IMG/VR virus record: IMGVR_UViG_3300027749_002876
Location: 1-64,000 of that record
Length of the DNA: 64,000 bases
Direction: 5' to 3' (one strand)
Shown here: piece after piece, positions 846-44,096 of the stretch
Layout: each line of letters starts with the position of its first letter
Position numbering within the stretch: position 1 is the stretch's first letter
Made by a program: the position numbers and the translations under genes
The notes under the pieces: generated by a model
Told to the model about the DNA's origin: nothing
The model's input: the letters and a program-made list of their open reading frames with translations, nothing else
The model's database searches: none

Positions 846-3119
846 ATGACAAATTCACCGGAAATTGAAAGCATTATCGAACAAGCCATTGTTTATGCCA
901 AAGAGCGTAAACACCAATATTGCACCTTAGAACATTTATTACTCGCATTAGTCACACATACCCCATTTAAAAAATGCTTAGACGGTTTTGGAGCAGATTC
1001 TGATTTACTAAGTCAAGAAATTGGTGCATATTTAGATAGCCTACACGCAATTGAACTTAAAGGTGTAGCCGCAGAAGATATTCAACCAAGAAAAACTAAT
1101 AGTCTTGAACGAACCATGAATCGTTCTGTGACACAAGTATTGTTTACCGGTCGCAGACAAGTCACAACTATTGATTTGTACCTATCAATTGCAAGTGAAG
1201 GTAATAGTCATGCACATTATTTCTTATTGAAATACGGTGTCAACAAACAGGAATTTTTAACTCATTGGCAAAAAACTTATAAGGGTGCTGAATTCACATC
1301 TAAATTATCAGAAGGTCAAGCAGAAGAAATTTTAGAAGAATACACAACTAATCTTTCTGACCTTGCACGTAAGGGAAAACTTGAACCACTAATTGGACGT
1401 GTCAAAGAACTTGACGATATTATTAATGTTCTTGCTAAACGATTTAAGTCAAATGTTTTGATGGTAGGTGATCCGGGAGTTGGTAAGACCGCTATTGCTG
1501 AAGGTCTTGCTAATATGATTGCAATGGGAGATTGCCCTGAATTCATTCTAAATCACGAGGTATATTCACTTGAAGTTGGTTCATTACTTGCTGGTAGCAA
1601 ATATAGAGGAGACTTTGAAGAAAAAGTTAAAGCAGTATTAGAAGCGTTAAACACAAAAAAGAAAGCAATTTTGTTTATTGACGAAGCGCACACTATGAGT
1701 GGCAGTGGAAGTGGTAGTGGTGGTAGTGTTGACTTTGCTAACATGATTAAGCCTGCAATTACCAAAGGCACGTTGAAAGTTATTGCTAGTACAACATGGG
1801 AAGAATACTATGACAGTTTTGAAAAAGATCGTGCATTGATGCGTAGATTCTATCGTGTATCAATTGATGAACCCAATCATGATACCACTGTTCGTATTCT
1901 AAGTGGATTGAGTCAACGATTGAGTGACTTTCATAGTGTAAAGATTGGAGAAGATGCTATTACTGCATCAGTTGAGTCAGCCGATCGTTACATTCATGAC
2001 CGCAAAAACCCTGACAAGAGTATTGACTTATTAGATGCAGCCTGTGCTAAACAAAGAGTATTGGGTAACAACGGTGTTGTAATTACCAAAGAATTAATTT
2101 TTGACCAAGTAGAGAAATTCACCGGAGTACCTGCTGATAAACTCAACGGAGATAATATGGATCGTATTCAAACTCTTGAAGTCAATGTCAAGGGTAAATT
2201 ATATGGTCAAGATGAAACTGTTGACAAAGTACTTGAGCGTGTCTATGTTTCATTTGCAGGTATCGGTAGTGAGACTAAACCTACAGCAAGTTTCTTGTTC
2301 TTAGGCCCAACAGGTACAGGCAAAACAGAATTGGCTAAGTTGTTGAGCAAGAACCTTGATATGCCATTACTCAAATATGATATGAGTGAATACGGTGAAC
2401 GACACTCAGTATCAAGTTTGATTGGTCCTCCTCCTGGTTATGTTGGTTTTGGCGATAGTCAAGTAAGCGGTGGACGATTGATTAATGATTTAAGCAAGAA
2501 TCCACACAGCATTTTATTATTTGACGAAGTTGAAAAAGCACACCCAGATATCTTCAACATCTTTTTACAAATGCTAGACGAAGGTCGTGTTACTGGATCG
2601 AATGGTAAAGAAGTTAACTGCAAAAATTCTATCATTATTATGACAAGTAATTTAGGTAGTAGTGATAGTGAACGCAACAACATTGGCTTTGGTAGTCAAG
2701 AGAAATTGGGTGAGGATGACAAAGCACTGAAGGAATTCTTTAAACCAGAATTCAGAAATCGTATTGATTTGGTATGTAAGTTTAATAAACTTGATATGCT
2801 TGCGATTAAGAAGATTGTTGTTAAGTTTTCTGATGAATTGAAAAAACAATTGTTGGATAAACACAACATTACTATTAATTTATCTGAGCCAGTAGTTGAA
2901 TATCTGGCAGAGCAAGGTTACGATAAGAAAATGGGCGCTCGACCGTTAGCACGAAAAATTGACGAATTGATTCGTGTTCCTCTTAGTAAGAAAATTTTAT
3001 TTGAACGAATCAAAAACGCAACCGTAACAGCGGTGATGGGCGATGAGGGCATTGAATATACAGTTGCTCAAAAAGCAACAGCAAGAGTAGGCGAAGATGG
3101 GATTATTGAAATTAGCTGA
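846..3119 (+). CDS. clpA: ATP-dependent Clp protease ATP-binding subunit ClpA
   Basis: Clp N-domain (EHLLLAL), two AAA+ modules (GDPGVGKT, GPTGTGKT, FIDEAH, LFDEVEKAH), GARPL, no ClpB M-domain. Confidence 0.9.
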   Translation: MTNSPEIESIIEQAIVYAKERKHQYCTLEHLLLALVTHTPFKKCLDGFGADSDLLSQEIGAYLDSLHAIELKGVAAEDIQPRKTNSLERTMNRSVTQVLFTGRRQVTTIDLYLSIASEGNSHAHYFLLKYGVNKQEFLTHWQKTYKGAEFTSKLSEGQAEEILEEYTTNLSDLARKGKLEPLIGRVKELDDIINVLAKRFKSNVLMVGDPGVGKTAIAEGLANMIAMGDCPEFILNHEVYSLEVGSLLAGSKYRGDFEEKVKAVLEALNTKKKAILFIDEAHTMSGSGSGSGGSVDFANMIKPAITKGTLKVIASTTWEEYYDSFEKDRALMRRFYRVSIDEPNHDTTVRILSGLSQRLSDFHSVKIGEDAITASVESADRYIHDRKNPDKSIDLLDAACAKQRVLGNNGVVITKELIFDQVEKFTGVPADKLNGDNMDRIQTLEVNVKGKLYGQDETVDKVLERVYVSFAGIGSETKPTASFLFLGPTGTGKTELAKLLSKNLDMPLLKYDMSEYGERHSVSSLIGPPPGYVGFGDSQVSGGRLINDLSKNPHSILLFDEVEKAHPDIFNIFLQMLDEGRVTGSNGKEVNCKNSIIIMTSNLGSSDSERNNIGFGSQEKLGEDDKALKEFFKPEFRNRIDLVCKFNKLDMLAIKKIVVKFSDELKKQLLDKHNITINLSEPVVEYLAEQGYDKKMGARPLARKIDELIRVPLSKKILFERIKNATVTAVMGDEGIEYTVAQKATARVGEDGIIEIS

Positions 3120-6747: not shown

Positions 6748-6764
6748 GTATTGATAAATACTTG

Positions 6765-8807
6765 ATGAACTTAAAAGAGCTTGATTCCTTCAAAATATCT
6801 GACGCCGTCACTTTCCATGACAAGCTTAACCCTGCGTTGTGGGCAGGAAATAAATTGCGTCCTGAAGTTAAAAATCAACTAGAAGAAATAGCAAAAGACT
6901 TCCTAGAAGAAATGGGTATCAATGATTTAGATGTTAGAGATATTACTATCTCTGGGTCTAACGCCGCATACAGTTATACAAAACACAGTGACTTGGATTT
7001 ACATCTCTTAGTCAATATAAATGATTTACCTAATAATGATATATACCGTGAATTCTTTGACGCAAAGAAATCATTATACAACGATAACCATGATATAACT
7101 ATTCATGGGGTTCCCGTAGAGTTATATATACAAGATGCCGCACAACCATCAGTGTCGTTAGGAGAATACAGTTTACAAAATGATAAGTGGTTGCGTATTC
7201 CTACAAAGCGTAGAGCTAACTTTGACCAATCAGCTACAAGATTGAAGTATGAAAAATTACTTGATATTGTAGAAAGAGCATTAGACTCAAAGAACTTAAC
7301 TAAAATTCAAAAAGTATTAAAGAAGATTAAGCAATATCGTCAAGCCGGGTTAGATAAAGGTGGCGAGTTTGGTCCTGAGAATTTAGCATATAAAGCATTG
7401 CGTAGTCAGGGGTATATTACAAAATTACACGATTTAAAAAACAAGTTGCATAGTGAGGTATTAACCATTGAAACTATGTATCAAAACATTGATGAAACCT
7501 TTGACCAACCTTATAAACTTAAATGGGAAAAAAGTGATTACGGTGACGTTGATGCCTATGCTAAAATGGATGATGGTAATTATCTAAGTATTATGTTCAA
7601 CAAAGGATATAATCAAGATAAGGAAGAAGCATGGAGTGTTGAGTTCTACAGAAACAACAGCCAAGAAGTTACCGGTGAGGGTGATGCACAACGTGTATTT
7701 GCTACTGTATTAAGTGCTATTCAAACATTCATTAAAAAATACAAGCCCAACAAAGTAATCTTTTCAGCTAGTAAAGAAGTTGAAGATGGACAAAACTCAG
7801 AAAGTAGAGCAAGACTATATGATAGTTTAGTTCAGCGTTATGCTAGAGCATGGGGATTTAGAGCATTTCGTGCTGATACTGGTAATAAAGTTATATACGA
7901 ATTAAGTAGAAAGCAACCGGTAGATGAAGATATCAGCCGTAGAGGATTCTTAAAAGGCATGGGCGCGGCAGCGGTAACAGGTAGTGCTAAGGCTGGTCAA
8001 TATCAATCTTCTACTGAAATAAGTCCAGAGCAGATGCAACAAATTTGGAAGCCAAGAAAAGGTGAGTTAGAAACTAGATGCTATGCTATATTAAAATCAT
8101 TTGCTAATAGTATAGCCGAATCGCATCCTGATTGGGTTAAAGTAATTCAAAAAATAAAAGTAAACACTACTTTAGGTGATAAAGTATTTCGTCAAGGAAA
8201 TGCCGCAAATTCTAGAGTATCATCTAGGGTAGTAAATGGTAAACCGATAGGTGTACAAGCCGGTCAAATTGGTATCGAAACAACTGTATTTTGGGATGCT
8301 CCTAATGATACGCTTGCTTTTATTTTAGGTCATGAGTGTGGACATATAATTATGAATCATGGGTTTTCTTTGGCATCTGATGCTAGAAATAATGAACAAG
8401 AAGCAGATATTATTGGAGCCTCTCTTGCTAAAAAAATAGGTTATGACAGGGCTAATTTCTTTAATTTTTTATTCAATGCTAAAGCTGAACAATTAAAAAA
8501 TGGATCACCCAATGATCCTCATTTAGAACCAGTTGATAGAGTAAAGTTTTTGAAAAAGAATGCTGATTTTGAATTATCACATAACACTATACAATATATT
8601 GATTCACTTGCTCAACAACTAAAGCAAGGCTTAGCAGAAGCAAGTGGCTATATCCCTAGTGAAAAAGAAAAAAACGATCCACGTTTTAAGACAGCATTAA
8701 CAGTAGATGTAGGACCATATAGCATCAAAAAGAACGCAAAAGCATTTAGCTGGCTTACATCAAGGGCCGGCATTCCACCAACAGCAAGCCCAAATGGTAA
8801 GGTATGA
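6765..8807 (+). CDS. modular polyprotein: Pol-beta-type nucleotidyltransferase + unknown domain + internal Tat signal and M48-like HExxH peptidase + short tail module
   Basis: GSN...SDLDLH...ELY; SRRGFLK at 7935-7955; HECGH at 8331-8345, EQEAD; start moved to the ATG 4 nt after TAAATA. Confidence 0.75.
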   Translation: MNLKELDSFKISDAVTFHDKLNPALWAGNKLRPEVKNQLEEIAKDFLEEMGINDLDVRDITISGSNAAYSYTKHSDLDLHLLVNINDLPNNDIYREFFDAKKSLYNDNHDITIHGVPVELYIQDAAQPSVSLGEYSLQNDKWLRIPTKRRANFDQSATRLKYEKLLDIVERALDSKNLTKIQKVLKKIKQYRQAGLDKGGEFGPENLAYKALRSQGYITKLHDLKNKLHSEVLTIETMYQNIDETFDQPYKLKWEKSDYGDVDAYAKMDDGNYLSIMFNKGYNQDKEEAWSVEFYRNNSQEVTGEGDAQRVFATVLSAIQTFIKKYKPNKVIFSASKEVEDGQNSESRARLYDSLVQRYARAWGFRAFRADTGNKVIYELSRKQPVDEDISRRGFLKGMGAAAVTGSAKAGQYQSSTEISPEQMQQIWKPRKGELETRCYAILKSFANSIAESHPDWVKVIQKIKVNTTLGDKVFRQGNAANSRVSSRVVNGKPIGVQAGQIGIETTVFWDAPNDTLAFILGHECGHIIMNHGFSLASDARNNEQEADIIGASLAKKIGYDRANFFNFLFNAKAEQLKNGSPNDPHLEPVDRVKFLKKNADFELSHNTIQYIDSLAQQLKQGLAEASGYIPSEKEKNDPRFKTALTVDVGPYSIKKNAKAFSWLTSRAGIPPTASPNGKV

Positions 8808-10006
8808 ACGATACTATTTGTAAATATGTATTCAATAGTATCACCATATCAAACAGCGGAACAGTAGACCCTTGTTGTGCACCAAATGGCCCGCATACTA
8901 AAGTATACCATGATAAAATAAAAAATCCTTTAGTTATACATGATGACTTTAATGAGGTATTGAACAACACCCAAATAGTTAATCTTAGAAAATCAATGGT
9001 TGCCGGAGAAAAAAATTCACTATGCGATACATGTTGGCAGAGTGAAAGAATTAATGGTGAGAGTGAGAGAACTTTAGGAAATACAAATTTACGAAATTCT
9101 GATGTATATAACAAAATAATTGATTTTTCAAATATATTTCATATTAACTTATTTTTAGGAAATAAATGTAATTTAGCATGTAGAATGTGTAGTCCTTGGT
9201 GCAGTTCATTAATAGCAAAACAAACTGACATTATTTACCAACGACCACCTACACCAATTATTCAATTTAATGATGATACTCAACAAAGAATCATTGAATT
9301 TATAGACAATAGTGAAAACTTAGAAAAAATTCATATGTATGGTGGTGAACCATTAATAAATGATTTCTATGATTTAATTTGCTCACATTTAATAGCTAAT
9401 GGAAGAGCCTCAAAAATCACATTGGATCTTTCAACTAATCTGCAAGTTGATTTAGAAAGAAAAAATGAATTACATCGTCACTTTAAGAATGTACACATTG
9501 CAGTAAGTGTAGACGGTGAGGGGGATACATATGAGTACATCAGATGGCCCGGTAATTGGAATAAAATACAAAATAACTTAAAAATATTAAGTAATACTAG
9601 GAACGATTTCCATGTCTCATCAGTAGTACAAAATTTAAATATTGATAATCTGTCAAATTTGATGGTATATTTAAGCACCATTGAAAATTTTAAATATCAA
9701 AATAGTACATACCGCAAAGTAACTAGTCACACCAATATAAATGATATTAAAATTATACCAACATGGGTTATAGAGCGTGAAATAGATCGTTTAAAAGCAT
9801 TAAATCAAAACATGAATTATACTATACATGCTTTAGTTAAGATGCTAGAAGCCGAAGTTGAACCATCACGTAACTTAGCATACGAAGAAGTTGCTACTTT
9901 CTTCAAACAACAGAAAGATTGGGATTCTCTTAGAAATCAAAATCTTTTTAAAACAAAGCCTCATTTTTTAGAGTTGGCCAAGCAATTTAACATCGAACCC
10001 TGGTAA
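8804..10006 (+). CDS. radical SAM protein with N-terminal SPASM/twitch-like Cys cluster
   Basis: CNLACRMC, GGEP, N-terminal C...CC...CxxC. Confidence 0.85.
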   Translation: MNDTICKYVFNSITISNSGTVDPCCAPNGPHTKVYHDKIKNPLVIHDDFNEVLNNTQIVNLRKSMVAGEKNSLCDTCWQSERINGESERTLGNTNLRNSDVYNKIIDFSNIFHINLFLGNKCNLACRMCSPWCSSLIAKQTDIIYQRPPTPIIQFNDDTQQRIIEFIDNSENLEKIHMYGGEPLINDFYDLICSHLIANGRASKITLDLSTNLQVDLERKNELHRHFKNVHIAVSVDGEGDTYEYIRWPGNWNKIQNNLKILSNTRNDFHVSSVVQNLNIDNLSNLMVYLSTIENFKYQNSTYRKVTSHTNINDIKIIPTWVIEREIDRLKALNQNMNYTIHALVKMLEAEVEPSRNLAYEEVATFFKQQKDWDSLRNQNLFKTKPHFLELAKQFNIEPW

Positions 10007-10057: not shown

Positions 10058-10855
10058 ATGAAAATCAATCAAATCGTACAAGAAACTACTACATCGGGAT
10101 CCGTTGCCCCAGTAGAGCATAGTTTTGTCAAAATGCAAACTCGCAGTCCTAGTGTCTATGGAAATACAAAAGCAGGATCACTATTCAAAGGTAAAAAGAC
10201 TAGTAAGCCTTTTGCTAACAGCATCAATGAGGGAGCAATGAACCAACTTTCAATGGACTTGAAAGGTGGAGTTGATGGATTATCTGACGAAGAATTTCAA
10301 AAGAAATATAAGATGACTAAGCAAGAAGCTCGCAAAGAGTTGACCGCTAATAGAAAAGACAACAAGAAGCCTGAAAAAGTTAACGAAGCTGACTTACAAG
10401 AAGATGATATCATAGTAGTTCCTGGTTATGGCCGCACGAGAAAAACTGGATTTACAAAGCATGGTCAAAGTCGTGTTGACCATGAAGTTGAAATGGCACG
10501 TAGTGATGTACTAGCTACAATGAAGAATGCCAGAGTAATCTACGAACTATTAAAAAATAAGTCAGAAGAAGAAGGATTAGAAGGCTGGGTACAAGAAAAA
10601 CTTATCAAAGCAAACGATTATCTAAACGCAGTAAAAGAATACTACGATGAAAAATTAATGCAACGAGAAGGCAAGATTGACTTTGCTAAAAAGATACAAA
10701 AAAACGTAGACAAGAGTAACAAGGCAGTAGTAAAGACTAGTAAAGAAGTTGGCTCAAGAGTTGCTGATATTGGTGCAGGTGGCAAAGAATATAATGTCAA
10801 AACTGACAAAGCATGGGATGATGCACACAAAGCTAAAGAAAGTAAAACAAAATGA
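10058..10855 (+). CDS. modular putative head-internal protein
   Basis: MKINQIVQE N-terminus; INE/VNE/LQE junctions; TAAATA upstream; start refined from 10019. Confidence 0.65.
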   Translation: MKINQIVQETTTSGSVAPVEHSFVKMQTRSPSVYGNTKAGSLFKGKKTSKPFANSINEGAMNQLSMDLKGGVDGLSDEEFQKKYKMTKQEARKELTANRKDNKKPEKVNEADLQEDDIIVVPGYGRTRKTGFTKHGQSRVDHEVEMARSDVLATMKNARVIYELLKNKSEEEGLEGWVQEKLIKANDYLNAVKEYYDEKLMQREGKIDFAKKIQKNVDKSNKAVVKTSKEVGSRVADIGAGGKEYNVKTDKAWDDAHKAKESKTK

Positions 10856-13800
10856 GTAGCATTTTAAAAGGTTTACAACTAAACGAATTATCTAATAAAA
10901 AATTAGGTGACTACAAAACAGCCGCAGGTGCTGATGCTACTGCCGCTGATAAAGAAGGTAACTATAAGCGTGGCGACAAGCGTATGAGTGGTATTATCAA
11001 AGCAACTAAGAAACAGTTTGCTAATGATGAAAGAAAAAAAGATGTGACAGAAACAGGCATTCCATTTCGTGGAGTGGGCGGCGCATTCAATCGCGGTGAT
11101 GATGAGCGACATGATTTAGATGTACCAAAACAAGTAAGACCTCAAGTTTGGGGCTTAAAGATCAATGGCAAAGTATGGAGCAAAGGTGGAAAATCAGTTA
11201 CATTCAATAGTAAAGACGCTGCCTTGAATATAAGAAATTCTATATTAAAGAATCGTCCTGATTTAGAAATTGGTTTAATAACTAAGGGCGGACAACAAGG
11301 TATGGCGGAAGCCACTGGTGATAAACCTTTTGACAATATGATGAAGAACATATCAAAAGGTACTAATAAACAAAAAACCTTAGACCGCAAGGAACAGCAA
11401 AAACAAACTCAACAACGAGCACGTGATGCTTTTGACAATATGTTTGGTGGTGGCAATCCTGCAGACAAATTAAAAATTAGAGAGCAAGGTGTGGCGGAAG
11501 GCTCAACTAACAGTAAATCAATAATTACTGAAACACGCACATACAAGTTATGGGAAAGTGCTGGTAAGAAGTTATATGAAGCACAACTAACAGCCGATCA
11601 AATTAATCAAATTTTTCAACAAGTAGAACAGGGTGCAACAGCGGCTGGCGGTAATCGCACTATGCTTGGCAGAGGCAAAGATGCTACTGCCGCTATAAGT
11701 AAAGCCTGGGAAGAGTTAAAAACTAAAGTACAAAATTCAGGACCTATTAAAGGTGTTGACGCTATGTATGACAAGGCTGCTGAACAATTAAAACAAGCAA
11801 CTGGTGGCGATCAAGGTGTCATGCAGTATGTTCAGAAGTATCGTGATTTTGCTAAAAAACATCCAATTGCACAGAGTTTAATTTATTCAGCATTGATTGC
11901 GGCTGCTGGTATTTCAGGTGCAGGTATTGGTGGTGCAGCCGCATTAGGTCTATTCAAACTAGTAGACAAACTATTGCAAGGCGAAAAGTTCAGTAGTGCC
12001 GCATACGCCGGTGCTAAAACTGGTGGCATGGCTTATGCCGCTGGCCAGATTGGTCAAGCGTTAAAAGGTACGCCTCAACAAGAATTACCCGGAGCACAAG
12101 GAGCACCTGGTCAATCTGAACTAGATCAAATCTATATGAATCGTGCTCAAGGGATGCAAGGCTCGGGTTATACGCAAACTGCAACTGGTCAAACAGGTGA
12201 CTTTGGACAACCAACATATAATATTATACCAGATGGTGGTGGTAGTTCGTATGACCAAGCATTCAAACAAGGTCTTGCAAAGTTTGCTGTCAACCCTAGT
12301 AACCCAAGCGCAAACGATATAATGCGAGCCAAAGACTATGCAGGAAAAGTAGCTTCTGGTATGCTTAAGCCTGTTAAGGAATCAGTAGAACTAACTGAAA
12401 GTCAAATCTTCTTACTGATCGGTAAGATAGTTGAACGTCACCGCAAACTTGATGAAGGGATCATGGACACCATCAAAGGCGCCGCAGGTAAGGCAGTTGA
12501 CTGGGCCAAGACCAAAGGCACTAACTTAACAACTAAAGTTACTGCTGACAAACTATTACAAGCATGGAAGAAAGCAGGTAGCCCAACTGACAGCTTAGAC
12601 ATTGCTAGTATTGTTCAACGAGCTGGCGTGCCAACAGCTACTATTAAACAAGTGTTTACTAACATGAAAATACCAGTGCCAGGTCAACCAGCAGTGGCAG
12701 CAACACCAGGTCAACCAGCAGTGGCAGCAACACCAGGTGCTAAACCAGCAGTGGCAGCAACACCAGGTGCTAAACCAGCAGTGGCAGCAACACCAGGTGC
12801 TAAACCAATTCAGACAACTACACCAGCTATAGTATCAGCACCGGCGGCAGCACCTGCAACCAAAATGGCAGTTCCTGCTCAAAAAACAACTATACCTCAA
12901 GTAGCACCTGTGGCTAAAGCGGCCGGAGCTACAGCACCTCAGGGGTTTAATGCTAGTAATGTAATGAAGATGCCTGGTATGGAAAAGTACGCTAAACCAG
13001 CAGTTGCAAAACCTGCGAATTTCAGCGGTGGCCCAACTGGTTACTCTAGTATGAATACTACATTTAAACAACCAGCAGTAAAACCAGCAATGGCAGCAAC
13101 ACCAGGTGCTAAACCAGCAGTGGCAGCAACACCTGTTGCACGTGTAGCAGAGGAATGGAGTCAAAAATACAAAAGCAGTATCAACTGTAGCCACCCCAAA
13201 GGCTTCTCACAAAAAGCTCACTGTGCTGGCAAGAAAAAGCATAATGAAAGTATTGAGATGGAAATGGTCTGTGAGGATTGCGGAATGTGTCAAACACACG
13301 GAGATCATTCACATGACAACTTAGAAGAAGCCTGTTGGAAAGGTTATCACAAAGAGGGTAACAAAAAGATGTTTGGAAAACAATATCCAGACTGTAGAAA
13401 GAATACAAAGGAAGGTGTGGCGAAGGGCCTATCAGAAATGGACAAATCACAAACTCCGCCAGGACGAGACGGTCACGTAAGTCATGGCACATACGGTTCG
13501 AGAGACAAGAAAGATCCAGATTCTGGTAAGAAGCAATACTACGGCAAAATGGAACGCCCTGAAAAAACAACCAAAACGGCATCGGATATTCTTAACAAAG
13601 CATTTAATAAAGGTGTAGCGGAAGAACAACATAGTTGCCCACATTGCGGTGGCGAGATGGTCAGTGAAGAACTAATGAACGAAAAGAAAGATGCTTGCTA
13701 CTACAAAGTCAAGAGCCGTTATAGTGTATGGCCTAGTGCTTACGCTAGTGGTGCATTAGTCAAGTGTCGTAAAAAAGGCGCAAGCAACTGGGGCAACGGC

Positions 13801-14514
13801 GGCAAGAAGAATGAGAGTTCTATTTTAGAAGGTATTGAACAAGCAGATGAAAGTTTACATGATTGGTTCAATAAAGAAAAATGGGTTCGCATGGATACTA
13901 AAGGAAAGATTAAAGGTCCATGTGCAAGAGAACCAGGAGAAGGTAAACCAAAATGTTTGCCACAAGCAAAAGCGCATAGCCTAGGTAAAAAAGGTCGTGC
14001 AAGTGCCGCACAACGCAAACGCAGAGAAGATCCTAATCCAGACCGGCATGGTTCAGCTATAAATGTCAACACAAAGAAAAAATCTAACGAAAATATAGGC
14101 GAGGGTTGGAGAGAAAAACTAGGCGCAGCCGCATTAGCCGGTTCTATGGCATTAGGCGCAGCCGGTGCACATGCTAGAGTTACCCCTGATGGACAAGGTG
14201 GCTTTACCGGTGGATTAAAACCCACAGCAACCGTGACAGCACCAGATAATACTCCATCTGCTACCGCACCTACTGCTTCATCTGACACATCAGATCCTTT
14301 TAAAGGTTTAGTCCGTGCTGATAGTGCCGATAGACAAGCAAAGACTATAACTGTTGACGGAAAAGAGTATGGACTTGTTGAAATATCCCCAACTGATATT
14401 AGACCACGTGGTGGACAACGAATCGTTGTTCCTCAAGCAGTATTAGGAGAACGAGGTATAGGAAACTATACAGGTATTCTAGTAGGTGATAGAGTATTTG
14501 TTATAAGTAAGTAA
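10852..14514 (+). CDS. 1220-aa modular polyprotein, putative head-internal/ejected cargo
   Basis: many short basic or Cys-containing modules separated by GVAE/LEE/MNE/LDE-type sites; hydrophobic segment; internal signal-like peptide. Confidence 0.7.
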   Translation: MSSILKGLQLNELSNKKLGDYKTAAGADATAADKEGNYKRGDKRMSGIIKATKKQFANDERKKDVTETGIPFRGVGGAFNRGDDERHDLDVPKQVRPQVWGLKINGKVWSKGGKSVTFNSKDAALNIRNSILKNRPDLEIGLITKGGQQGMAEATGDKPFDNMMKNISKGTNKQKTLDRKEQQKQTQQRARDAFDNMFGGGNPADKLKIREQGVAEGSTNSKSIITETRTYKLWESAGKKLYEAQLTADQINQIFQQVEQGATAAGGNRTMLGRGKDATAAISKAWEELKTKVQNSGPIKGVDAMYDKAAEQLKQATGGDQGVMQYVQKYRDFAKKHPIAQSLIYSALIAAAGISGAGIGGAAALGLFKLVDKLLQGEKFSSAAYAGAKTGGMAYAAGQIGQALKGTPQQELPGAQGAPGQSELDQIYMNRAQGMQGSGYTQTATGQTGDFGQPTYNIIPDGGGSSYDQAFKQGLAKFAVNPSNPSANDIMRAKDYAGKVASGMLKPVKESVELTESQIFLLIGKIVERHRKLDEGIMDTIKGAAGKAVDWAKTKGTNLTTKVTADKLLQAWKKAGSPTDSLDIASIVQRAGVPTATIKQVFTNMKIPVPGQPAVAATPGQPAVAATPGAKPAVAATPGAKPAVAATPGAKPIQTTTPAIVSAPAAAPATKMAVPAQKTTIPQVAPVAKAAGATAPQGFNASNVMKMPGMEKYAKPAVAKPANFSGGPTGYSSMNTTFKQPAVKPAMAATPGAKPAVAATPVARVAEEWSQKYKSSINCSHPKGFSQKAHCAGKKKHNESIEMEMVCEDCGMCQTHGDHSHDNLEEACWKGYHKEGNKKMFGKQYPDCRKNTKEGVAKGLSEMDKSQTPPGRDGHVSHGTYGSRDKKDPDSGKKQYYGKMERPEKTTKTASDILNKAFNKGVAEEQHSCPHCGGEMVSEELMNEKKDACYYKVKSRYSVWPSAYASGALVKCRKKGASNWGNGGKKNESSILEGIEQADESLHDWFNKEKWVRMDTKGKIKGPCAREPGEGKPKCLPQAKAHSLGKKGRASAAQRKRREDPNPDRHGSAINVNTKKKSNENIGEGWREKLGAAALAGSMALGAAGAHARVTPDGQGGFTGGLKPTATVTAPDNTPSATAPTASSDTSDPFKGLVRADSADRQAKTITVDGKEYGLVEISPTDIRPRGGQRIVVPQAVLGERGIGNYTGILVGDRVFVISK
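12679..12807 (+). repeat. in-frame tandem repeat, 27/30-nt units encoding PG(Q/AK)PAVAAT; further copies at 13081-13134
   Basis: ccaggtcaaccagcagtggcagcaaca x2 then ccaggtgctaaaccagcagtggcagcaaca x2.5. Confidence 0.95.
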
Positions 14515-16226: not shown

Positions 16227-16802
16227 ATGCGTATTGGGGAAGTTTTATCAGAATCAGCAATAAATAAACTAGCAACAAAATTGCCTAGCTTAGAAAAGCA
16301 CGACTATACTACTCTAGATAAGCTACTACAAACCGTAGCCAAACAACACAATCTTACTGGAAAAGCGTTACATGACTTATTTGTTAAAAAATTTCATACA
16401 ACACCAGATAATTGGATTAAGAACAAAATAGATGAGGATGATGTTGATTCTGATTTGCAAAATGAAGTTGACAAATTCTGTGAGTGGGCTTGTCAACAAC
16501 TTCATGTACAAAATAAACCACATATTGAATTGAGCATGGATACTGAAGAAGCTCAAACAAATCATCACACCGGAGGTCATGTCATGGGAGATGATAATAT
16601 TTGGGTATACGTGAATAATCGCAATCTAGTTGATGTCTTACGCACAGTATTCCATGAATTGGTACATGTTCGTCAGGGTGAGTTGAACATGATATCACCG
16701 GGAGACAGTTATCCCGGTAGCCCGATTGAAGCAATGGCAGATATGCTAGCAGGCAAATATATTAAAATCTATGGTGAAAAGAATCATAAAATTTTTCAAT
16801 AA
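16227..16802 (+). CDS. HExxH metallopeptidase-like protein with capsid-targeting-like N-terminus
   Basis: RTVFHELVH...EAMAD; MRIGEVLSE. Confidence 0.7.
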   Translation: MRIGEVLSESAINKLATKLPSLEKHDYTTLDKLLQTVAKQHNLTGKALHDLFVKKFHTTPDNWIKNKIDEDDVDSDLQNEVDKFCEWACQQLHVQNKPHIELSMDTEEAQTNHHTGGHVMGDDNIWVYVNNRNLVDVLRTVFHELVHVRQGELNMISPGDSYPGSPIEAMADMLAGKYIKIYGEKNHKIFQ

Positions 16803-27916: not shown

Positions 27917-28597
27917 ATGAGTTATAATAAAACAAAAACAGATCCAGAGTTGGGTCAACAAGTGCATGAACACTTAGTCAAAATGGGTGTTGAAACCCCA
28001 ATCAAACATCGTAATCTAGACCGTAAAGAAAAGATTGATATCATTGCAGGTAACTTCACCGAGATCATGCGTGTTCTCGGTTTAGATTTATCAGATGATA
28101 GTTTAATTGACACACCTAATCGTGTCGCCAAGATGTACGTCAACGAAATCTTTTGGGGACTAGACTATGAAGCATTCCCTAAATGTACAACAGTTAACAA
28201 CAAGATGCAATACAATGAAATGGTTGTAGAGCGTAATGTTAATGTTCAATCTAACTGCGAACATCATTTTGTAGTCATCGATGGGTTGGCTACTGTAGCT
28301 TATGTCCCTAAACAAAAAGTATTAGGGCTTAGTAAGATAAACAGAATTGTAGAATATTTCAGTAAGAGACCTCAGATACAAGAGAGGTTAACAGAGCAAA
28401 TTTTTCACACCTTACAGTTTATCCTTGATACAGAAGATGTTGCAGTTATGATTGATGCACAACACTATTGCGTTAAAAGTCGTGGCGTAGAAGATACGGG
28501 TAGTAGCACAGTTACTTGTCGTTTAGGTGGTGGTTTTAAAACTGATCCTGCCGCGCGTAGCGAGTTTTTACAAATTGCTAACAAAGGTTGTAAATAA
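27917..28597 (+). CDS. folE: GTP cyclohydrolase I
   Basis: TPNRVAKMY, CEHH, GLSKINR, QIQERLT, HYCVKSRG. Confidence 0.97.
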   Translation: MSYNKTKTDPELGQQVHEHLVKMGVETPIKHRNLDRKEKIDIIAGNFTEIMRVLGLDLSDDSLIDTPNRVAKMYVNEIFWGLDYEAFPKCTTVNNKMQYNEMVVERNVNVQSNCEHHFVVIDGLATVAYVPKQKVLGLSKINRIVEYFSKRPQIQERLTEQIFHTLQFILDTEDVAVMIDAQHYCVKSRGVEDTGSSTVTCRLGGGFKTDPAARSEFLQIANKGCK

Positions 28598-30665: not shown

Positions 30666-31514
30666 ATGGCACAATTAAAAATTTCAGAATTATTTTATAG
30701 TATTCAGGGTGAAGGTAGATACATGGGTGTTCCCTCTGTGTTCCTACGAACTTATGGATGTAATTTCACATGCGGTGGCTTTGGAATGTCTAAGGGAGAA
30801 ATGAGTAGTGAGAGAGATGTTATTGCAATTAAAGCAGAAGATTATACAGATTATAAATCCCTACCGCTTGTCAGCACAGGATGTGATAGTTATGCATCTT
30901 GGGACCCTCGTTTCAAACATCTTAGTCCTATGCTCACTACCGATAATATTGTTGGTAGTATTATGGATATACTCCCTCATAGTCGTTGGATGGATGAGCA
31001 CCTTGTTATCACGGGCGGTGAACCTCTGCTTGGATGGCAAAGAGCATATCCAGAATTACTTTCACATGAAAAAATGAGAAGTCTCAAAGAGATTACATTT
31101 GAAACTAATGGCACACAAGAACTCAGTCAAGATTTAAAAATATATCTACAACAATGGAAGATTTACAGAGAAAAAAATGCACTTACATTTAGTGTTAGTC
31201 CTAAACTAAGTATCAGCGGTGAAAAGTGGGAAGAAGCAATACTTCCCGATGTTATTACTCAATATGAAGACGTTGGTTTTGTATATCTTAAATTTGTTGT
31301 AGCGACAGAAGATGATGTACTAGAAGCAGAGAAGGCAGTTAAAGAATATCGTGTTGCAGGATTCAGAGGTCCAGTCTACTTGATGCCGTGCGGTGGTGTT
31401 GAAAGTATGTACAGTATGAATGCTAAGAATGTAGCGATTGCGGCAATGAAGCGTGGATGGCGTTATAGTGACAGACTTCAAGTGCCGTTGTTTAAAAACG
31501 AGTGGGGCACATAA
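30666..31514 (+). CDS. queE: 7-carboxy-7-deazaguanine synthase (radical SAM)
   Basis: ELFYSIQGEG, CNFTC...CD with insert, TGGEP, ETNGT, SVSPK. Confidence 0.92.
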   Translation: MAQLKISELFYSIQGEGRYMGVPSVFLRTYGCNFTCGGFGMSKGEMSSERDVIAIKAEDYTDYKSLPLVSTGCDSYASWDPRFKHLSPMLTTDNIVGSIMDILPHSRWMDEHLVITGGEPLLGWQRAYPELLSHEKMRSLKEITFETNGTQELSQDLKIYLQQWKIYREKNALTFSVSPKLSISGEKWEEAILPDVITQYEDVGFVYLKFVVATEDDVLEAEKAVKEYRVAGFRGPVYLMPCGGVESMYSMNAKNVAIAAMKRGWRYSDRLQVPLFKNEWGT

Positions 31515-33874: not shown

Positions 33875-34807
33875 TTATAGTCCAATCTTGCCTGGATACA
33901 TTGGACCAGATTTGATTCTTTCACCACCGTCAAAATAAGAAATCTCAATTGGCAATGTGTCCCATCCAAGTTTTGCGGCTGCCATAATTCTATGATTACC
34001 TTCGTTAACCCACGCACTACCATCATATGCTACATTAATGAAGGGTTTATACTCTTCGCCGGTATGTCCGTGTAATGGTAATTTACCGGTGCTGTTCATT
34101 ATTTTCATTATGGCAGCAAGATCATTGTGACGAATATTTGATTGCTCACGGCGCATACCCGGTATTTGTCTTAGTATATTAACTGGAACATTAACATTCC
34201 TAACAGTAGCAGTAGTCTTGCCCATATAGGGTAGACCATTACGGTCAGGACTTTTACTTTTAGCATAATCAATAGCGTCTTGCAACCAATCTTCATTGGG
34301 TACATCTACGCTTAATACACCTTCTGTCATTTTATTCTGGGGTTTGTCATATGCTCTACGGTCAGTTAAATGATATTCCATTCCGTTGTTTTTGCTATAT
34401 TTCTGATATAAATCCCAATCAGGCAACAAGCGTTGAATCATCTTAGCATACAATCCAATACGGCTATCTTCTTTAGCGTTGAATGTAATTTCTTCTACTT
34501 TATCAAGACCATACTCTTTGATAAATTCACGTGTGATATCAACTGCGGTAGATAATACTTGTGCTGAATTGCCTGTGCCAGTACGCCCGAACAAGTCTAA
34601 ATATTCGGGATCAGTATCATTTCTTAACAAACGAAATTGTATTTCCCACTTAGTAGGGTTACTATGTGGATTACTAAAAGCAAGCCATTGATAATCTCTA
34701 TCACCTACTGTAAAATTGGCAGCGGCTTCTTCACCACCGCGAAACTTCCATTCCCAGTTCTTCTTACCCGGCTGAAATATTTCAGTAATGAATTCAGTGG
34801 CTCTCAC
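33875..34807 (-). CDS. two-module protein: domain shared with the 6765 polyprotein + ParB/Srx-like domain
   Basis: MRATEFITE start, MTE junction, EGNHRIMAA (ParB-type GxHR). Confidence 0.7.
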   Translation of the reverse strand: MRATEFITEIFQPGKKNWEWKFRGGEEAAANFTVGDRDYQWLAFSNPHSNPTKWEIQFRLLRNDTDPEYLDLFGRTGTGNSAQVLSTAVDITREFIKEYGLDKVEEITFNAKEDSRIGLYAKMIQRLLPDWDLYQKYSKNNGMEYHLTDRRAYDKPQNKMTEGVLSVDVPNEDWLQDAIDYAKSKSPDRNGLPYMGKTTATVRNVNVPVNILRQIPGMRREQSNIRHNDLAAIMKIMNSTGKLPLHGHTGEEYKPFINVAYDGSAWVNEGNHRIMAAAKLGWDTLPIEISYFDGGERIKSGPMYPGKIGL

Positions 34808-35359: not shown

Positions 35360-36973
35360 TTAGTGTCTCAATAGCAATGTTGAAATAATGTTGGGATCGT
35401 TAGCACTGATGTCACCTTCACCTGGAGCAACGATAACATTGTACTTCATACCTGCCGGGATAGATTTACGCTTGGCCATGTACTCATCGTATGATAAGAT
35501 ACTGTTAGCACTTAGTCCATACTCACTAGCCAATCTTTGTTTTAGTTCAGGTAACTTGTCAGGTTGTACTTGCCATTGGCCACTTGACCCCTTAACTAGG
35601 TTTTTCTTTTCATCCTTAACTAACAAGTCTTGGAACAAATCATCTGGAACAATACGACTGTTCTTAGTTGTATCTAAGTTAGCGTCTTTAGCTTTAACTT
35701 GTTTCTCTTGACTTGTGTTAGCACCTTCACTCCAATTGATAATGAAGTTTGGTGGTTTCTGTGCAAGTGCGGCACCTGCCATCTTAGTGTAAGCATAGAA
35801 TTTAACGTCAGGATGCTTTGCAGCCATCTTCAATGCCATGTCTAGGTATTCTGGGCTAAAGAAGTCGCCTGCATCATGCCAGCGAATAGTAGTTTGCCAA
35901 CCATTAGGGAATTTCTTGTCACCCTTCTTACCCATTGCTTCTTCTTTAGATATCTCGGCACTTAACTGGTTAAAGAAACCACTTGGATCATTCAATAGAT
36001 ACGTTAATATTCTTCCGTCACTTTGCCAAGCAGCCTTGAACTGTACTTTACCACCCTTCATAGCGAAACAATCTACTTTACATGAGCCAGCACCCGGACA
36101 TGTGTTAACAATGATTAGATTGTTAGTAGATTCATCTACTGCGATACCAGTTAATGCGGCAAAGCCAACATTGAAGAATTGCTCAAACTCTCCATTGCTA
36201 TGCTTCATTTTTTCGTTTTGCTTTAGTAATGATTTTGGGCGTTGTGATAATGATTGTTTAATTTTATCTTCATCATATGTCTTACCATCTGGACCCAAGT
36301 ATTCAATGATACTTGACCGATGGATATAAGGCATCTTGTACTTGTCGCCTTTAGTCTTACCAGAGACATACTTCTCATTACCCTTTTTGTCTAATTTAAC
36401 TTGACCAGTCTTCTTGTCAATGTCATCAGTACCTTTAATACGATTCATATAGTCTTGGAACTCTTGACCTTTCAAATCACGGGTACTTGCTGGTAGTGTA
36501 GTAGCTTCTTCTAGACCAGATAGTTTACGAATTCTATCTAGTGTTTCTGAAATATCTTCTCCAAAACGTTTTTGATATACATTAGAATCCATTGAATTTC
36601 TACTACCAATAGTTTTCATTCCCTCACCGGCTAGCAATAAATCATACATTAATTTAATAACTTTTACAGGAGAAGTCAATGTGTCAACTCTATCATAGAA
36701 ATAAGCAATTTTTTCAGGCTTCATTCTACGAGCAGGCTTGCCTTTAATTAATTCTTTAGCACGTGCCTTAAGAGTGGCAAAATCACGAATTTTTTCTAAT
36801 TCATGTATATCATTTATATCAAAATTATCACCTTCAATATCTTCATCTACTTCTTCTTCCCCGGGCATATCGCCAGCTTTAGCAACAAATTGTTGAGGTG
36901 TCATAACTTGAACACCATTAACTGCTCCGGGTAGCTTTGGCGTCACACCTTCGTATAATTCTTTAAAGTTCAT
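35360..36973 (-). CDS. modular protein with C-terminal phage Gp88-like Cys-cluster domain
   Basis: TCPGAGSCKVDCFA, IRWHDAGDF, FYAYTK; MNFKELYE start; VDE/ISE/LEE junctions. Confidence 0.65.
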   Translation of the reverse strand: MNFKELYEGVTPKLPGAVNGVQVMTPQQFVAKAGDMPGEEEVDEDIEGDNFDINDIHELEKIRDFATLKARAKELIKGKPARRMKPEKIAYFYDRVDTLTSPVKVIKLMYDLLLAGEGMKTIGSRNSMDSNVYQKRFGEDISETLDRIRKLSGLEEATTLPASTRDLKGQEFQDYMNRIKGTDDIDKKTGQVKLDKKGNEKYVSGKTKGDKYKMPYIHRSSIIEYLGPDGKTYDEDKIKQSLSQRPKSLLKQNEKMKHSNGEFEQFFNVGFAALTGIAVDESTNNLIIVNTCPGAGSCKVDCFAMKGGKVQFKAAWQSDGRILTYLLNDPSGFFNQLSAEISKEEAMGKKGDKKFPNGWQTTIRWHDAGDFFSPEYLDMALKMAAKHPDVKFYAYTKMAGAALAQKPPNFIINWSEGANTSQEKQVKAKDANLDTTKNSRIVPDDLFQDLLVKDEKKNLVKGSSGQWQVQPDKLPELKQRLASEYGLSANSILSYDEYMAKRKSIPAGMKYNVIVAPGEGDISANDPNIISTLLLRH

Positions 36974-37866
36974 TTTTTAAGATTCCTAATTTTCTGTTCT
37001 GCCAACATTACCAATTGTTCTAATTGCTCTACACTTTCACAATGCCATCTACGCAAACTCTTATTGATGTTACTGTTTGGATCATTTGCTGTTTTAGCAC
37101 CGGTACGATGTTTCTTCATACCTCGCATTCTAGCACAGAATGATTTGCGACGGGCGGCGGCCTTGCTACCTTTTTTAAGTTTGCTTGGCTTAGTTGTAAC
37201 TGCTGTTTGAATCTTGCTACCAGGATGACTACGGCGATAGCTAGCTACACTCTTTTTACTCATGCCACCCACACGCTTGTGATTGTACTTTGACCAGTTC
37301 TCGCCTTCGTTTAATTCTAAATCACTGTGATTAAACGCAATGTATGTGTCACCATTAACATCACCTGGACGAATTAAGAACACACCTGCATCGTCATCAC
37401 CTGATTCATCTTGACCAATTTCCCAACCCATTGCTTCCAATGTTCTTTGTGCTTTAGCCATTTGTTGTTCTGTGCCCAACCACCATTGTGCGGCAAGTTG
37501 ACGTAATATTTCTTCCTCATCAGGTTCACGGTCATCATCACTACCAAGTGCAAATTCATCTAAGTAACCTTCATCAATATTTGGATTACCAATTTGCTCT
37601 GCTACACTATTTAAACGGTCATTACTAGTTGTGACATAACTATACATCCAACCATCTAAACTAGTACCACTGTCTAGTTTTTCTTTGATTTTTACAGCAT
37701 TTCTAATTATTTCACGAATCTCACCCTGAGCCATGCCATTGACTTGTTCATCTTCCATTGCATAGCCTTCATTTTTAGGCTTTTTACCAGCTTTCTTCAT
37801 GGCAATAGCAATGGCAGCTTGCTGTGCTGGATTGGCTGCTTCATTGATAAATTCTTTTATTCTCAT
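36970..37866 (-). CDS. modular basic putative head-internal protein
   Basis: MRIKEFINE start; RRKSFCARM...LRRWHC module; KNE/IDE/LDE/LNE junctions. Confidence 0.65.
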   Translation of the reverse strand: MRIKEFINEAANPAQQAAIAIAMKKAGKKPKNEGYAMEDEQVNGMAQGEIREIIRNAVKIKEKLDSGTSLDGWMYSYVTTSNDRLNSVAEQIGNPNIDEGYLDEFALGSDDDREPDEEEILRQLAAQWWLGTEQQMAKAQRTLEAMGWEIGQDESGDDDAGVFLIRPGDVNGDTYIAFNHSDLELNEGENWSKYNHKRVGGMSKKSVASYRRSHPGSKIQTAVTTKPSKLKKGSKAAARRKSFCARMRGMKKHRTGAKTANDPNSNINKSLRRWHCESVEQLEQLVMLAEQKIRNLKK

Positions 37867-43843: not shown

Positions 43844-44096
43844 TTACTTTGAAAAAAATCGTTACAAACCTGTCTATGAGTTTATGGCACGTGTAACCGG
43901 TATGCATGGAAAGATTCGTTGGATAGGAAGTGTCGGCAACGATACTGTTATCAGCGACCAAGTAGGACCTATGTTACACATACACCTTGACTTACCATTA
44001 AAGATTGATAGTAAATATACATATCATCTCTTTGTGAAACACAAAGGTGTAAAAAGATTGACAAATTTTAATGACGAAAAAGTTTCCAAACGATAA
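43830..44096 (+). CDS. hypothetical protein
   Basis: AAGGA SD. Confidence 0.7.
   Translation: MNLADYFEKNRYKPVYEFMARVTGMHGKIRWIGSVGNDTVISDQVGPMLHIHLDLPLKIDSKYTYHLFVKHKGVKRLTNFNDEKVSKR

Follow-up and report, generated by a model that had tools for sequence, protein, structure and literature searches.

Why would a phage protein carry a complete predicted bacterial export signal in its middle rather than at its beginning, and can such a signal ever be read? We examined this question at a locus of an uncultivated, giant freshwater phage, using as our window a 64,000-nucleotide stretch (positions 1 to 64,000 of IMG/VR record IMGVR_UViG_3300027749_002876). A single open reading frame at 6762/6765-8807 on the plus strand encodes 680 amino acids (numbered here from the ATG at 6765). 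According to a preliminary description made from the sequence alone, about 390 residues into this ORF a twin-arginine (Tat) motif S-R-R-x-F-L-K at 7935-7955, with an Ala/Gly h-region and an AxA site, directly follows a predicted protease site and precedes an M48-like peptidase that is closed by Q-G-L-A-E, with no start codon directly before the motif. We confirmed this observation. The preliminary description also proposed that head maturation cuts at V-D-E and L-A-E, releasing a pre-folded peptidase with a new N-terminal Tat signal, which the host Tat system would move to the periplasm after ejection without phage gene expression, perhaps for envelope remodelling or superinfection exclusion. 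Comparative data support this interpretation only in part, and they suggest, but do not prove, that the phage can place an enzyme in the outer compartment of a newly infected cell.

The residues V386-D387-E388 (7920-7928) are followed by D389-I-S-R392-R393-G-F-L-K397, where S-R-R-G-F-L-K occupies 7935-7955, and then by a weakly hydrophobic Gly/Ala h-region (G398-A408), a c-region lysine (K409) and A408-K409-A410 (7986-7994), after which the sequence continues with G411-Q. The predicted signal peptide spans aa 389-410 (7929-7994, plus strand), and its h-region, c-region lysine and A-x-A site are conserved in relatives. The NCBIfam model TIGR01409 (TAT_signal_seq) scored 19.2 bits against a curated cutoff of 16.7, whereas Pfam PF10518 scored 19.5-21.2 bits, just under its cutoff of 22.7. 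The pattern [ST]RRxF[LI] occurs once in all six frames of the window, where by our own rough estimate about 0.02 would be expected. However, the signal does not lie at the N-terminus of the translated protein as Tat signals normally do, although it does so in stand-alone relatives. No in-frame start codon lies within 110 residues upstream: the nearest upstream ATG, GTG or TTG is at aa 277, and the next, M399, lies after the twin arginines.

The signal is followed by a predicted soluble M48-like (gluzincin) zinc peptidase at aa 411-625 (7995-8639, plus strand), with HECGH at aa 523-527 (8331-8345), E-Q-E-A-D at aa 544-548 (8394-8408) and a distal H-x-x-P...R, and it ends in Q-G-L-A-E. Pfam Peptidase_M48 (PF01435) scored 35-41 bits against a cutoff of 20.3, but the match covers only profile positions 45-82. 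A profile built from the family hit the PDB M48 entry 3c37 (E=8e-11), BepA (1e-10) and minigluzincins. In 30 relatives, the H, E and H of the HExxH motif are invariant and the E..AD residues nearly so. An AF2 model of the segment aa 386-626, which includes the signal, gave a pLDDT of 76 and a pTM of 0.76, with the signal itself disordered. When this peptidase model was compared with the PDB by Foldseek, the best hits were selecase and neprilysin-type gluzincins at E of about 0.6-1, which is not significant. A search of 185,000 species genomes for a bacterial origin of the signal and peptidase returned only distant, partial hits.

The rest of the ORF is equally modular, comprising 4-5 modules in all. 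A nucleotidyltransferase-like domain (aa 1-236, 6765-7472) matches phrog_36119 (1e-42) and ends in L-T-I-E; its stand-alone homologues occur in cyanophages, Lak and other huge phages. A short linker bounded by I-D-E (aa 237-244) precedes a DUF6934-like domain (aa 245-388, 7497-7928), which scored 26.3 bits with PF22028, just under its cutoff of 27, matches phrog_16075 and phrog_6387, and ends in V-D-E. In one relative, P0011, the same module is bounded by LAE and GVAE. After the G-L-A-E junction (aa 622-625, 8628-8639) comes a C-terminal tail of 55 amino acids (8640-8804, beginning A-S-G-Y-I-P-S), which is 80-92% identical across hundreds of otherwise different proteins. Of 1,186 database hits, about 1,170 match only this tail, and 219 IMG/VR loci carry it. 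About 73 of 80 tail-bearing genes start with the nucleotidyltransferase domain, so that the family can be described as a nucleotidyltransferase, a variable cargo and a conserved tail. The tail had no PDB or Pfam match, and its AF2 model (pLDDT 56) indicates that it is not an autonomous fold.

This organization is not an assembly artefact. The full ORF is identical in a second assembly (locus L024), and a third assembly (L001/L023) carries its 3′ part, cut off by the contig end. Two relatives, P0002 (61% identical) and P0006 (76%), have the same architecture. In about 50,000 GenBank phage records, however, we found no DNA or protein match to the signal-peptidase cassette or to the tail. A first family alignment was too diverse for a locus search and was replaced by a second one.

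Every junction in this ORF is of the hydrophobic-x-Glu type (T-I-E, I-D-E, V-D-E and L-A-E), and G[VLM]AE and [IVL]-x-E|[AS] occur at module borders across the family, [IVL]-x-E preceding nearly every tail examined. Of the five G[VLMI]AE motifs in the window, four lie in this ORF and in ORF 10852-14514. Synonymous codons differ between these sites, so conservation is at the protein level, which led us to reject a nucleotide-level signal such as a Shine-Dalgarno or recombination site. The preliminary description had named as its own refutation the case in which the twin arginines are not conserved or not tied to xxE sites in homologues, and the comparison came out in its favour. Indeed, in 42 of 46 non-identical Tat-peptidase relatives a [LIVMF]-x-E lies with its Glu 2-4 residues before the twin arginines, against a background expectation of about 6%. 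This holds for 18 of 20 internal copies, which sit behind at least five different upstream modules, and for 24 of 26 N-terminal copies, although h-x-E is a short motif and the sequences are phylogenetically related, so the counts are not independent. The cassette also ends in ...LAE wherever it occurs, and stand-alone genes stop right there. In relatives of up to about 1,500 amino acids, an ATP-dependent amidoligase lies downstream of the cassette, and export would make sense only if the C-terminal junction is cut.

Which protease could recognize such sites? The prohead proteases of T4, phiKZ and SPN3US cut after Glu. T4 gp23 has L-T-E|A, gp22 has many h-A-E sites, and the scaffolds of T4 and of freshwater relatives are full of them. 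Stand-alone relatives of the cassette begin M-[RK]-x-x-E-[FI]-[IL]-x-E (also seen in the form M-R-A-x-E-F-I-x-E) and run straight into the Tat motif. This leader resembles the T4 capsid-targeting sequence (CTS) MKTYQEFIAE, which targets proteins to the capsid and is removed by gp21. The same leader sits on Tat-less relatives of the peptidase and on clusters of unrelated neighbouring genes, and is therefore an independent signal, as with the T-even Ip loci. By its DNA polymerase (PolB), the phage belongs to the T4/Rak2 superfamily, being closest to Rak2-like and Phosso jumbo phages. The two members that we checked, K64-1 and pEa_SNUABM_47, have a gp21/S77 homologue beside the portal gene, and pEa_SNUABM_47 also has the major capsid gene nearby.

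The prohead protease gene of this contig, however, was not found. Local tblastn searches with the gp21 proteins of T4, K64-1 and pEa_SNUABM_47, plus T4 gp20 and gp23, gave no hits in the window or in 101 related loci. A scan of IMG/VR with a gp21 alignment showed that S77 genes are common in freshwater viral contigs, but this contig was not among the best 80. An exact look-up of one such protease did not return this contig, and a partial degenerate DNA pattern scan made no link to it. The window holds replication and auxiliary genes only. T4-type late promoters (TATAAATA) occur three times on its plus strand against about 7 expected, which is uninformative, and none lies upstream of the gene. 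Moreover, the protein itself lacks a leader of about 10 amino acids ending in h-x-E, since it starts with M-N-L-K-E-L-D-S-F, which belongs to the nucleotidyltransferase domain; its packaging signal would have to be something else, perhaps the tail.

We hypothesize that ORF 6765-8807 is a processed polyprotein of a roughly 525-kb jumbo phage, and that its fourth module is a portable cassette made of a hydrophobic-x-Glu cleavage site, a complete Tat signal, a soluble M48-like zinc peptidase and a second cleavage site. In this view, the precursor would be made late and incorporated into the prohead, where a T4-type (S77/gp21) protease would cut after Glu236, Glu244, Glu388 and Glu625, freeing a peptidase whose new N-terminus (D-I-S-R-R-G-F-L-K...) is a Tat signal with a three-residue n-region. 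While internal, the signal would be masked, so that the enzyme is not exported from the producing cell. After ejection with the DNA into the next host, the enzyme would refold, bind zinc and be exported by TatABC, signal peptidase I would cut at A-K-A|G, and the enzyme would act on an envelope or periplasmic protein. What our analysis establishes is the motifs and their positions, the modular architecture, the conservation of the junction, the signal and the catalytic residues, the CTS-like leaders of stand-alone relatives and the superfamily placement, whereas packaging in virions, cleavage and the enzyme responsible, ejection, Tat- and RR-dependent export and the target are inferred from sequence alone. 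Export after ejection, as opposed to export in the producing cell, is pure inference, and the proposed biological role is a guess. Since the Tat signal of stand-alone relatives is already close to the N-terminus, they could simply be exported in the producing cell, which weakens the masking argument. We give this reading a probability of about 0.4.

The polyprotein could also be processed outside the capsid, in the cytoplasm of the infected cell, by its own M48-like domain, by one of the leader-bearing Tat-less paralogues, of which the lineage encodes many, or by a host enzyme, and the released peptidase would then be exported by Tat during the same infection, for example for envelope remodelling, exclusion or lysis. 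The non-structural neighbourhood, the lack of a late promoter and the immediately usable signal of the stand-alone forms would fit this view, and zincin peptidases have been proposed to process polyvalent proteins (PMC5512222). However, most proteins with the nucleotidyltransferase and the tail have the same h-x-E junctions but no peptidase module, so self-processing cannot be general, and both the junction motif, which matches the specificity of T4-type prohead proteases, and the CTS-like leader speak against this unlikely alternative. Somewhat less likely still, the signal could be vestigial, having been shuffled into multidomain proteins with the cassette and now serving only as a flexible Gly/Ala linker in a protein that stays cytoplasmic or intravirion and uncut at this point. 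Domain shuffling is indeed rampant in this family, Tat-less peptidases make a cytoplasmic role possible, and the segment is disordered in the model. Yet every internal copy recovered alongside a Tat-positive peptidase keeps the twin arginines, an uncharged h-region and the small-x-small c-region, even though the peptidase domain has diverged to 27-40% identity, and a linker would not conserve S/T-R-R-x-F-L-K.

It is also doubtful that the internal signal engages TatBC directly, as an internal or hairpin signal without upstream cleavage, with the C-terminal part translocated and separated by signal peptidase I cutting at A-K-A|G and the nucleotidyltransferase half remaining in the cytoplasm. 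The A-K-A site is conserved, internal Tat motifs occur in some polytopic Rieske proteins, and Tat signals tolerate N-terminal extensions. However, this would not explain the conserved h-x-E two to four residues upstream, and it would drag into the periplasm the tail and, in relatives, an amidoligase and other cytoplasmic-type modules. Finally, although the modules occur as separate genes elsewhere, we consider it very improbable that the polyprotein is really two or more genes through internal initiation or an assembly or frame artefact, given the absence of start codons between aa 277 and M399, the lack of any excess of promoter-like sites, the identical ORF in independent assemblies and the fused relatives at 61-76% identity.

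The closest known systems each share part of this organization. The T4 internal proteins (IPI-III, Alt) have a short N-terminal leader with the core E-F-I-x-E, cut after Glu by gp21 and shared by otherwise unrelated, clustered, fast-evolving genes; their cargo is delivered with the DNA, and Alt is also trimmed at its C-terminus. Here, several cargo modules are strung into one polypeptide with internal junctions, the protein of the window has no such leader, and none of the T4 internal proteins described in the papers we read carries an export signal; moreover, the T4 parallel is inferred here, without experimental data. The polyvalent proteins of phages and conjugative elements (Iyer et al. 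2017, PMC5512222) combine many unrelated enzymatic domains, often with a zincin-like peptidase, as this ORF does, and are proposed to be virion-packed, injected and proteolytically released. That paper contains no occurrence of signal peptides, Tat or the periplasm, while in our case the defining MuF or MPTase-PolyVal domains and a head-gene neighbourhood were not detected, and the family has a fixed N-terminal nucleotidyltransferase and a fixed tail. Compared with bacterial Tat substrates and soluble envelope M48 peptidases (BepA, LoiP), the signal motif is canonical and the best PDB profile matches are M48 entries, including periplasmic BepA, but the signal lies 388 residues inside the precursor and the domain is much smaller than BepA, without its TPR part. 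In the giant phages phiKZ and SPN3US, which are a different lineage, many head and ejection proteins with long propeptides are cut after Glu at short x-x-E motifs, but these are A/S/G-x-E, whereas here the P3 residue is hydrophobic, as in T4.

Injected phage proteins are so far known to act in the cytoplasm (T4 Ip1-3, Alt) or to form the ejection conduit, and we found no published description of the proposed route in the literature searched. If a pre-made enzyme were delivered to the periplasm of a newly infected cell without any gene expression, by a Tat signal kept silent in a capsid-packaged polyprotein, unmasked by the prohead protease and read by the host after ejection, this would be a new way for a virus to reach the cell envelope at time zero, and could serve to exclude competitors, modify receptors or prepare the envelope. 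It would also add export signals to the repertoire of polyvalent and internal proteins, define a very large, uncharacterised family in freshwater jumbo phages with a swappable cargo, and extend the CTS principle to a distant lineage; in practice, a masked Tat signal could be exploited in T4-type protein-delivery vectors. We regard this fuller reading as possible but tentative.

Other genes in the window carry related features. A second modular polyprotein of 1,220 amino acids (10852-14514, plus strand) has junctions G-M-A-E (11299), G-V-A-E (11488) and G-V-A-E (13612), and carries a second internal signal-like segment at 14095-14175, in which I-G-E is followed by G-W-R-E-K, a 17-residue Ala/Gly/Leu stretch and A-H-A; a similar segment lies after L-D-E inside another protein, P0116. 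Given this second signal-like segment behind an h-x-E site, protease-unmasked export signals on ejected cargo may be a general principle. CTS-like leaders occur in four other genes of the window: M-K-I-N-Q-I-V-Q-E at 10058-10855 and M-R-I-G-E-V-L-S-E at 16227-16802 on the plus strand, and, on the minus strand, M-R-A-T-E-F-I-T-E at 33875-34807, followed by a DUF6934-like and a ParB-like region, and M-R-I-K-E-F-I-N-E at 36970-37866. The C-terminal module of this last gene is widespread in T4-like cyanophages and is annotated as a structural protein in S-P4 and S-E7.

The ORF at 6765-8807 on the plus strand encodes 680 residues, which we number from the ATG at 6765. Within it, V386-D387-E388 is followed by D389-I-S-R-R-G-F-L-K397, the h-region G398-A408, K409, and A408-K-A410|G411. 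The preliminary description had reported a Tat motif inside a polyprotein, directly after a predicted protease site and ahead of an M48-like peptidase, and this observation held, with S-R-R-G-F-L-K lying exactly at 7935-7955. The peptidase motifs are HECGH (aa 523-527) and E-Q-E-A-D (aa 544-548), followed by a distal H-x-x-P...R and by G-L-A-E at aa 622-625. The Tat model of NCBIfam passed its curated cutoff (19.2 against 16.7) while that of Pfam fell just short (19.5-21.2 against 22.7), and Peptidase_M48 passed (35-41 against 20.3). When a profile of 30 relatives was searched against the PDB, it hit the M48 entries 3c37 and BepA at about 1e-10, and minigluzincins more weakly. The AF2 model of aa 386-626 has a pLDDT of 76 and a pTM of 0.76, with a disordered signal and a helical core with a small sheet. 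However, Foldseek found no significant PDB neighbour for this model, the top non-significant hits being gluzincins, and the family assignment therefore rests on sequence profiles.

The nearest in-frame start codon upstream of the signal is at aa 277, while the next one, M399, lies behind the twin arginines, and the motif occurs only once in all six frames of the window. The ORF is not an artefact, since it is identical over its full length in a second assembly, a third assembly carries its 3' part, cut off by the contig end, and relatives of 61% and 76% identity have the same order of modules.

The window covers positions 1-64000 of a 524,565-bp IMG/VR contig and has 37% G+C. It carries a family-B DNA polymerase closest to that of Sinorhizobium phage Phosso (48%) and to those of Rak2/K64-1, CBB and Atu_ph07-type jumbo phages (about 42-44%), along with a ligase, nucleases, Clp-type ATPases (ClpA/B-like and ClpX-like AAA+ ATPases, 846-3119 and 62530-63732), deazaguanine-pathway genes and radical-SAM genes, but no head genes. 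GTP cyclohydrolase and QueE-like genes suggest a 7-deazaguanine pathway and possibly DNA modification, and they are accompanied by two radical-SAM/SPASM proteins, one of which directly overlaps the stop codon of the polyprotein gene (27917-28597, 30666-31514, 8804-10006 and 44071-45333 for these genes together).

The protein has five modules. A nucleotidyltransferase (aa 1-236, ending in L-T-I-E), which occurs as a stand-alone protein in cyanophages, Lak and other huge phages, is followed by a short linker (aa 237-244, ending in I-D-E), a DUF6934-like domain (aa 245-388, ending in V-D-E), the Tat signal plus peptidase (aa 389-625, ending in G-L-A-E) and a 55-aa tail (aa 626-680) that reaches the C-terminus. 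Every junction is hydrophobic-x-Glu. The motif G-[VLM]-A-E recurs at module borders, and four of its five occurrences in the window lie in this ORF and in the neighbouring 1,220-aa ORF. The codons at these sites differ, so the constraint is on the protein.

When the C-terminal 300 residues were searched against the database, all but about 15 of the 1,186 hits matched only the tail, at 80-90% identity. These proteins nearly all begin with the same nucleotidyltransferase and end with the tail, whereas they differ in a swappable middle part (deaminase, GNAT, nitroreductase-named, DUF6934, peptidase and others). They form a hypervariable gene family whose NTase-led members run from 302 to 1,364 aa. 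This genome has two paralogues, the second lying near position 180 kb of the contig (locus L027 of our locus set). The tail itself (A-S-G-Y-I-P-S..., window 8640-8804, and loci L022-L101 of the same set) is 80-92% identical across hundreds of proteins that otherwise differ, and it is preceded by [IVL]-x-E in nearly all of the roughly 150 tails examined. It has no Pfam or PDB match and no known homologue, and does not fold on its own in AlphaFold (pLDDT 56). It therefore looks like a binding peptide, and may be a capsid-targeting or partner-binding propeptide.

An exhaustive HMMER search and two locus searches gave 46 non-identical sequences with both the signal and the peptidase, of which 26 are stand-alone or N-terminal and 20 are internal, behind at least five different upstream modules, in proteins of up to about 1,500 aa. 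It had been proposed beforehand that the twin arginines should be tied to a putative cleavage site in homologues, and indeed in 42 of the 46 a [LIVMF]-x-E lies with its Glu 2-4 residues before RR, the P3 residue being I (20), L (14), V (6), F (1) or M (1). In contrast, the per-position background of that motif in these proteins is 1.6%, which is about 6% for a four-position window. The cassette ends in ...L-A-(E), and many stand-alone genes stop exactly there. In three related loci (L006, L009 and L012) and in the related protein P0133, an Amidoligase_2 domain follows the cassette, and a cytoplasmic ATP-dependent enzyme has no use behind an export signal unless the junction is cut. Among 185,000 bacterial and archaeal species genomes, we found only distant, partial homologues of the cassette.

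Stand-alone cassettes begin with M-R-A-x-E-F-I-x-E, or close variants such as M-K-I-x-E-I-I-x-E, and run straight into D/A-I/L-S/T-R-R. The same leader heads relatives of the peptidase that lack a Tat signal, as well as four other genes in the window (at 10058, 16227, 34807 on the minus strand and 37866 on the minus strand) and clusters of unrelated adjacent genes in related contigs. These clusters comprise up to seven neighbours with unrelated bodies (loci L002, L005 and L012), resembling the T-even internal-protein hotspots, and in some loci the leader starts with GTG. One of the four window genes (36970-37866, minus strand) has a C-terminal module shared with hundreds of T4-like cyanophages and pelagiphages, which is annotated as a structural protein in Synechococcus phages S-P4 and S-E7. 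Altogether we found 64 distinct leaders with the consensus M-[RK]-[IA]-x-E-[FI]-[IL]-x-E. The T4 capsid-targeting sequence, MKTYQEFIAE, directs internal proteins into the prohead, is removed by gp21 with positions 8 and 10 needed for processing, and is the only similarity among Ip1-3, which sit in variable hotspots. The resemblance in sequence (E-F-I-x-E), position and genomic behaviour is close, although it remains no more than a resemblance.

The prohead proteases of T4, phiKZ and SPN3US all cut after Glu. T4 gp23 is cut at L-T-E|A, T4 gp22 contains many [LIV]-A-E sites, and the scaffold-like gene next to S77 proteases in freshwater contigs is equally full of them. In these freshwater S77-protease loci, the small gene between the portal gene and the scaffold-like gene begins with M-L-L-N-E-F-I (locus L185, 1619-1867), which echoes the leader core, and T4 gp68 contains L-N-E-F-I. 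Homologues of gp21 are present next to the portal gene in K64-1 and pEa_SNUABM_47, the latter also having the major capsid gene nearby, and they are abundant in freshwater viral contigs. However, our searches did not show that this particular contig has one, and this is the main gap in the argument.

The preliminary description had inferred that head maturation cuts at VDE and LAE and releases a peptidase that the host Tat system would export after ejection, an interpretation that our comparisons support only in part. With some refinements it remains our best reading, although a tentative one (probability of about 0.4). In this view, the precursor enters the prohead, the S77 protease cuts at the h-x-E junctions, the peptidase emerges with a Tat signal having a 3-residue n-region, and after ejection it is exported by Tat and trimmed at A-K-A|G. 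The motifs, the order of the modules and the conservation of the junction and signal can be read directly from the sequences, whereas entry into the prohead, cleavage and the protease responsible, ejection and Tat-dependent export are all inferred. Two points weaken this reading, since the window protein has no leader and would need another targeting signal, perhaps the tail, and since the stand-alone forms have a usable signal even before cleavage.

Other scenarios seem less likely. The polyprotein could be processed in the cytoplasm and the peptidase exported within the same infection, which is doubtful but the strongest of the alternatives. A vestigial signal is somewhat less probable, and is disfavoured by the full conservation of the motif while the domain drifts to about 30% identity. 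An uncleaved internal Tat signal resolved by signal peptidase is unlikely, given the conserved upstream site and the downstream cytoplasmic modules, and internal initiation or an artefact is very improbable.

The closest known systems are the T4 internal proteins bearing the capsid-targeting sequence and the polyvalent proteins of Iyer et al. 2017, a paper that contains no mention of signal peptides, twin-arginine or periplasm. Full-text literature searches combining Tat with phage ejection, internal or polyvalent proteins found nothing relevant. While the gene can be placed beside these known systems, the route, if it is real, would be a new delivery principle.

The Tat cassette may not be the only export signal inside these polyproteins. 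A second kind of internal signal- or anchor-like segment, G-W-[RK]-E-K plus about 17 Ala/Gly/Leu residues, occurs directly after an h-x-E site at 14095-14175, within the neighbouring ORF 10852-14514, where it ends in A-H-A, and also at aa ~190-215 of the related protein P0116. The 1,220-aa polyprotein encoded by ORF 10852-14514 further contains tandem P-G-A-K-P-A-V-A-A-T repeats, a TM-like stretch (aa 346-368), Cys-rich small basic modules (DUF5872-like) and three G-[MV]-A-E junctions.
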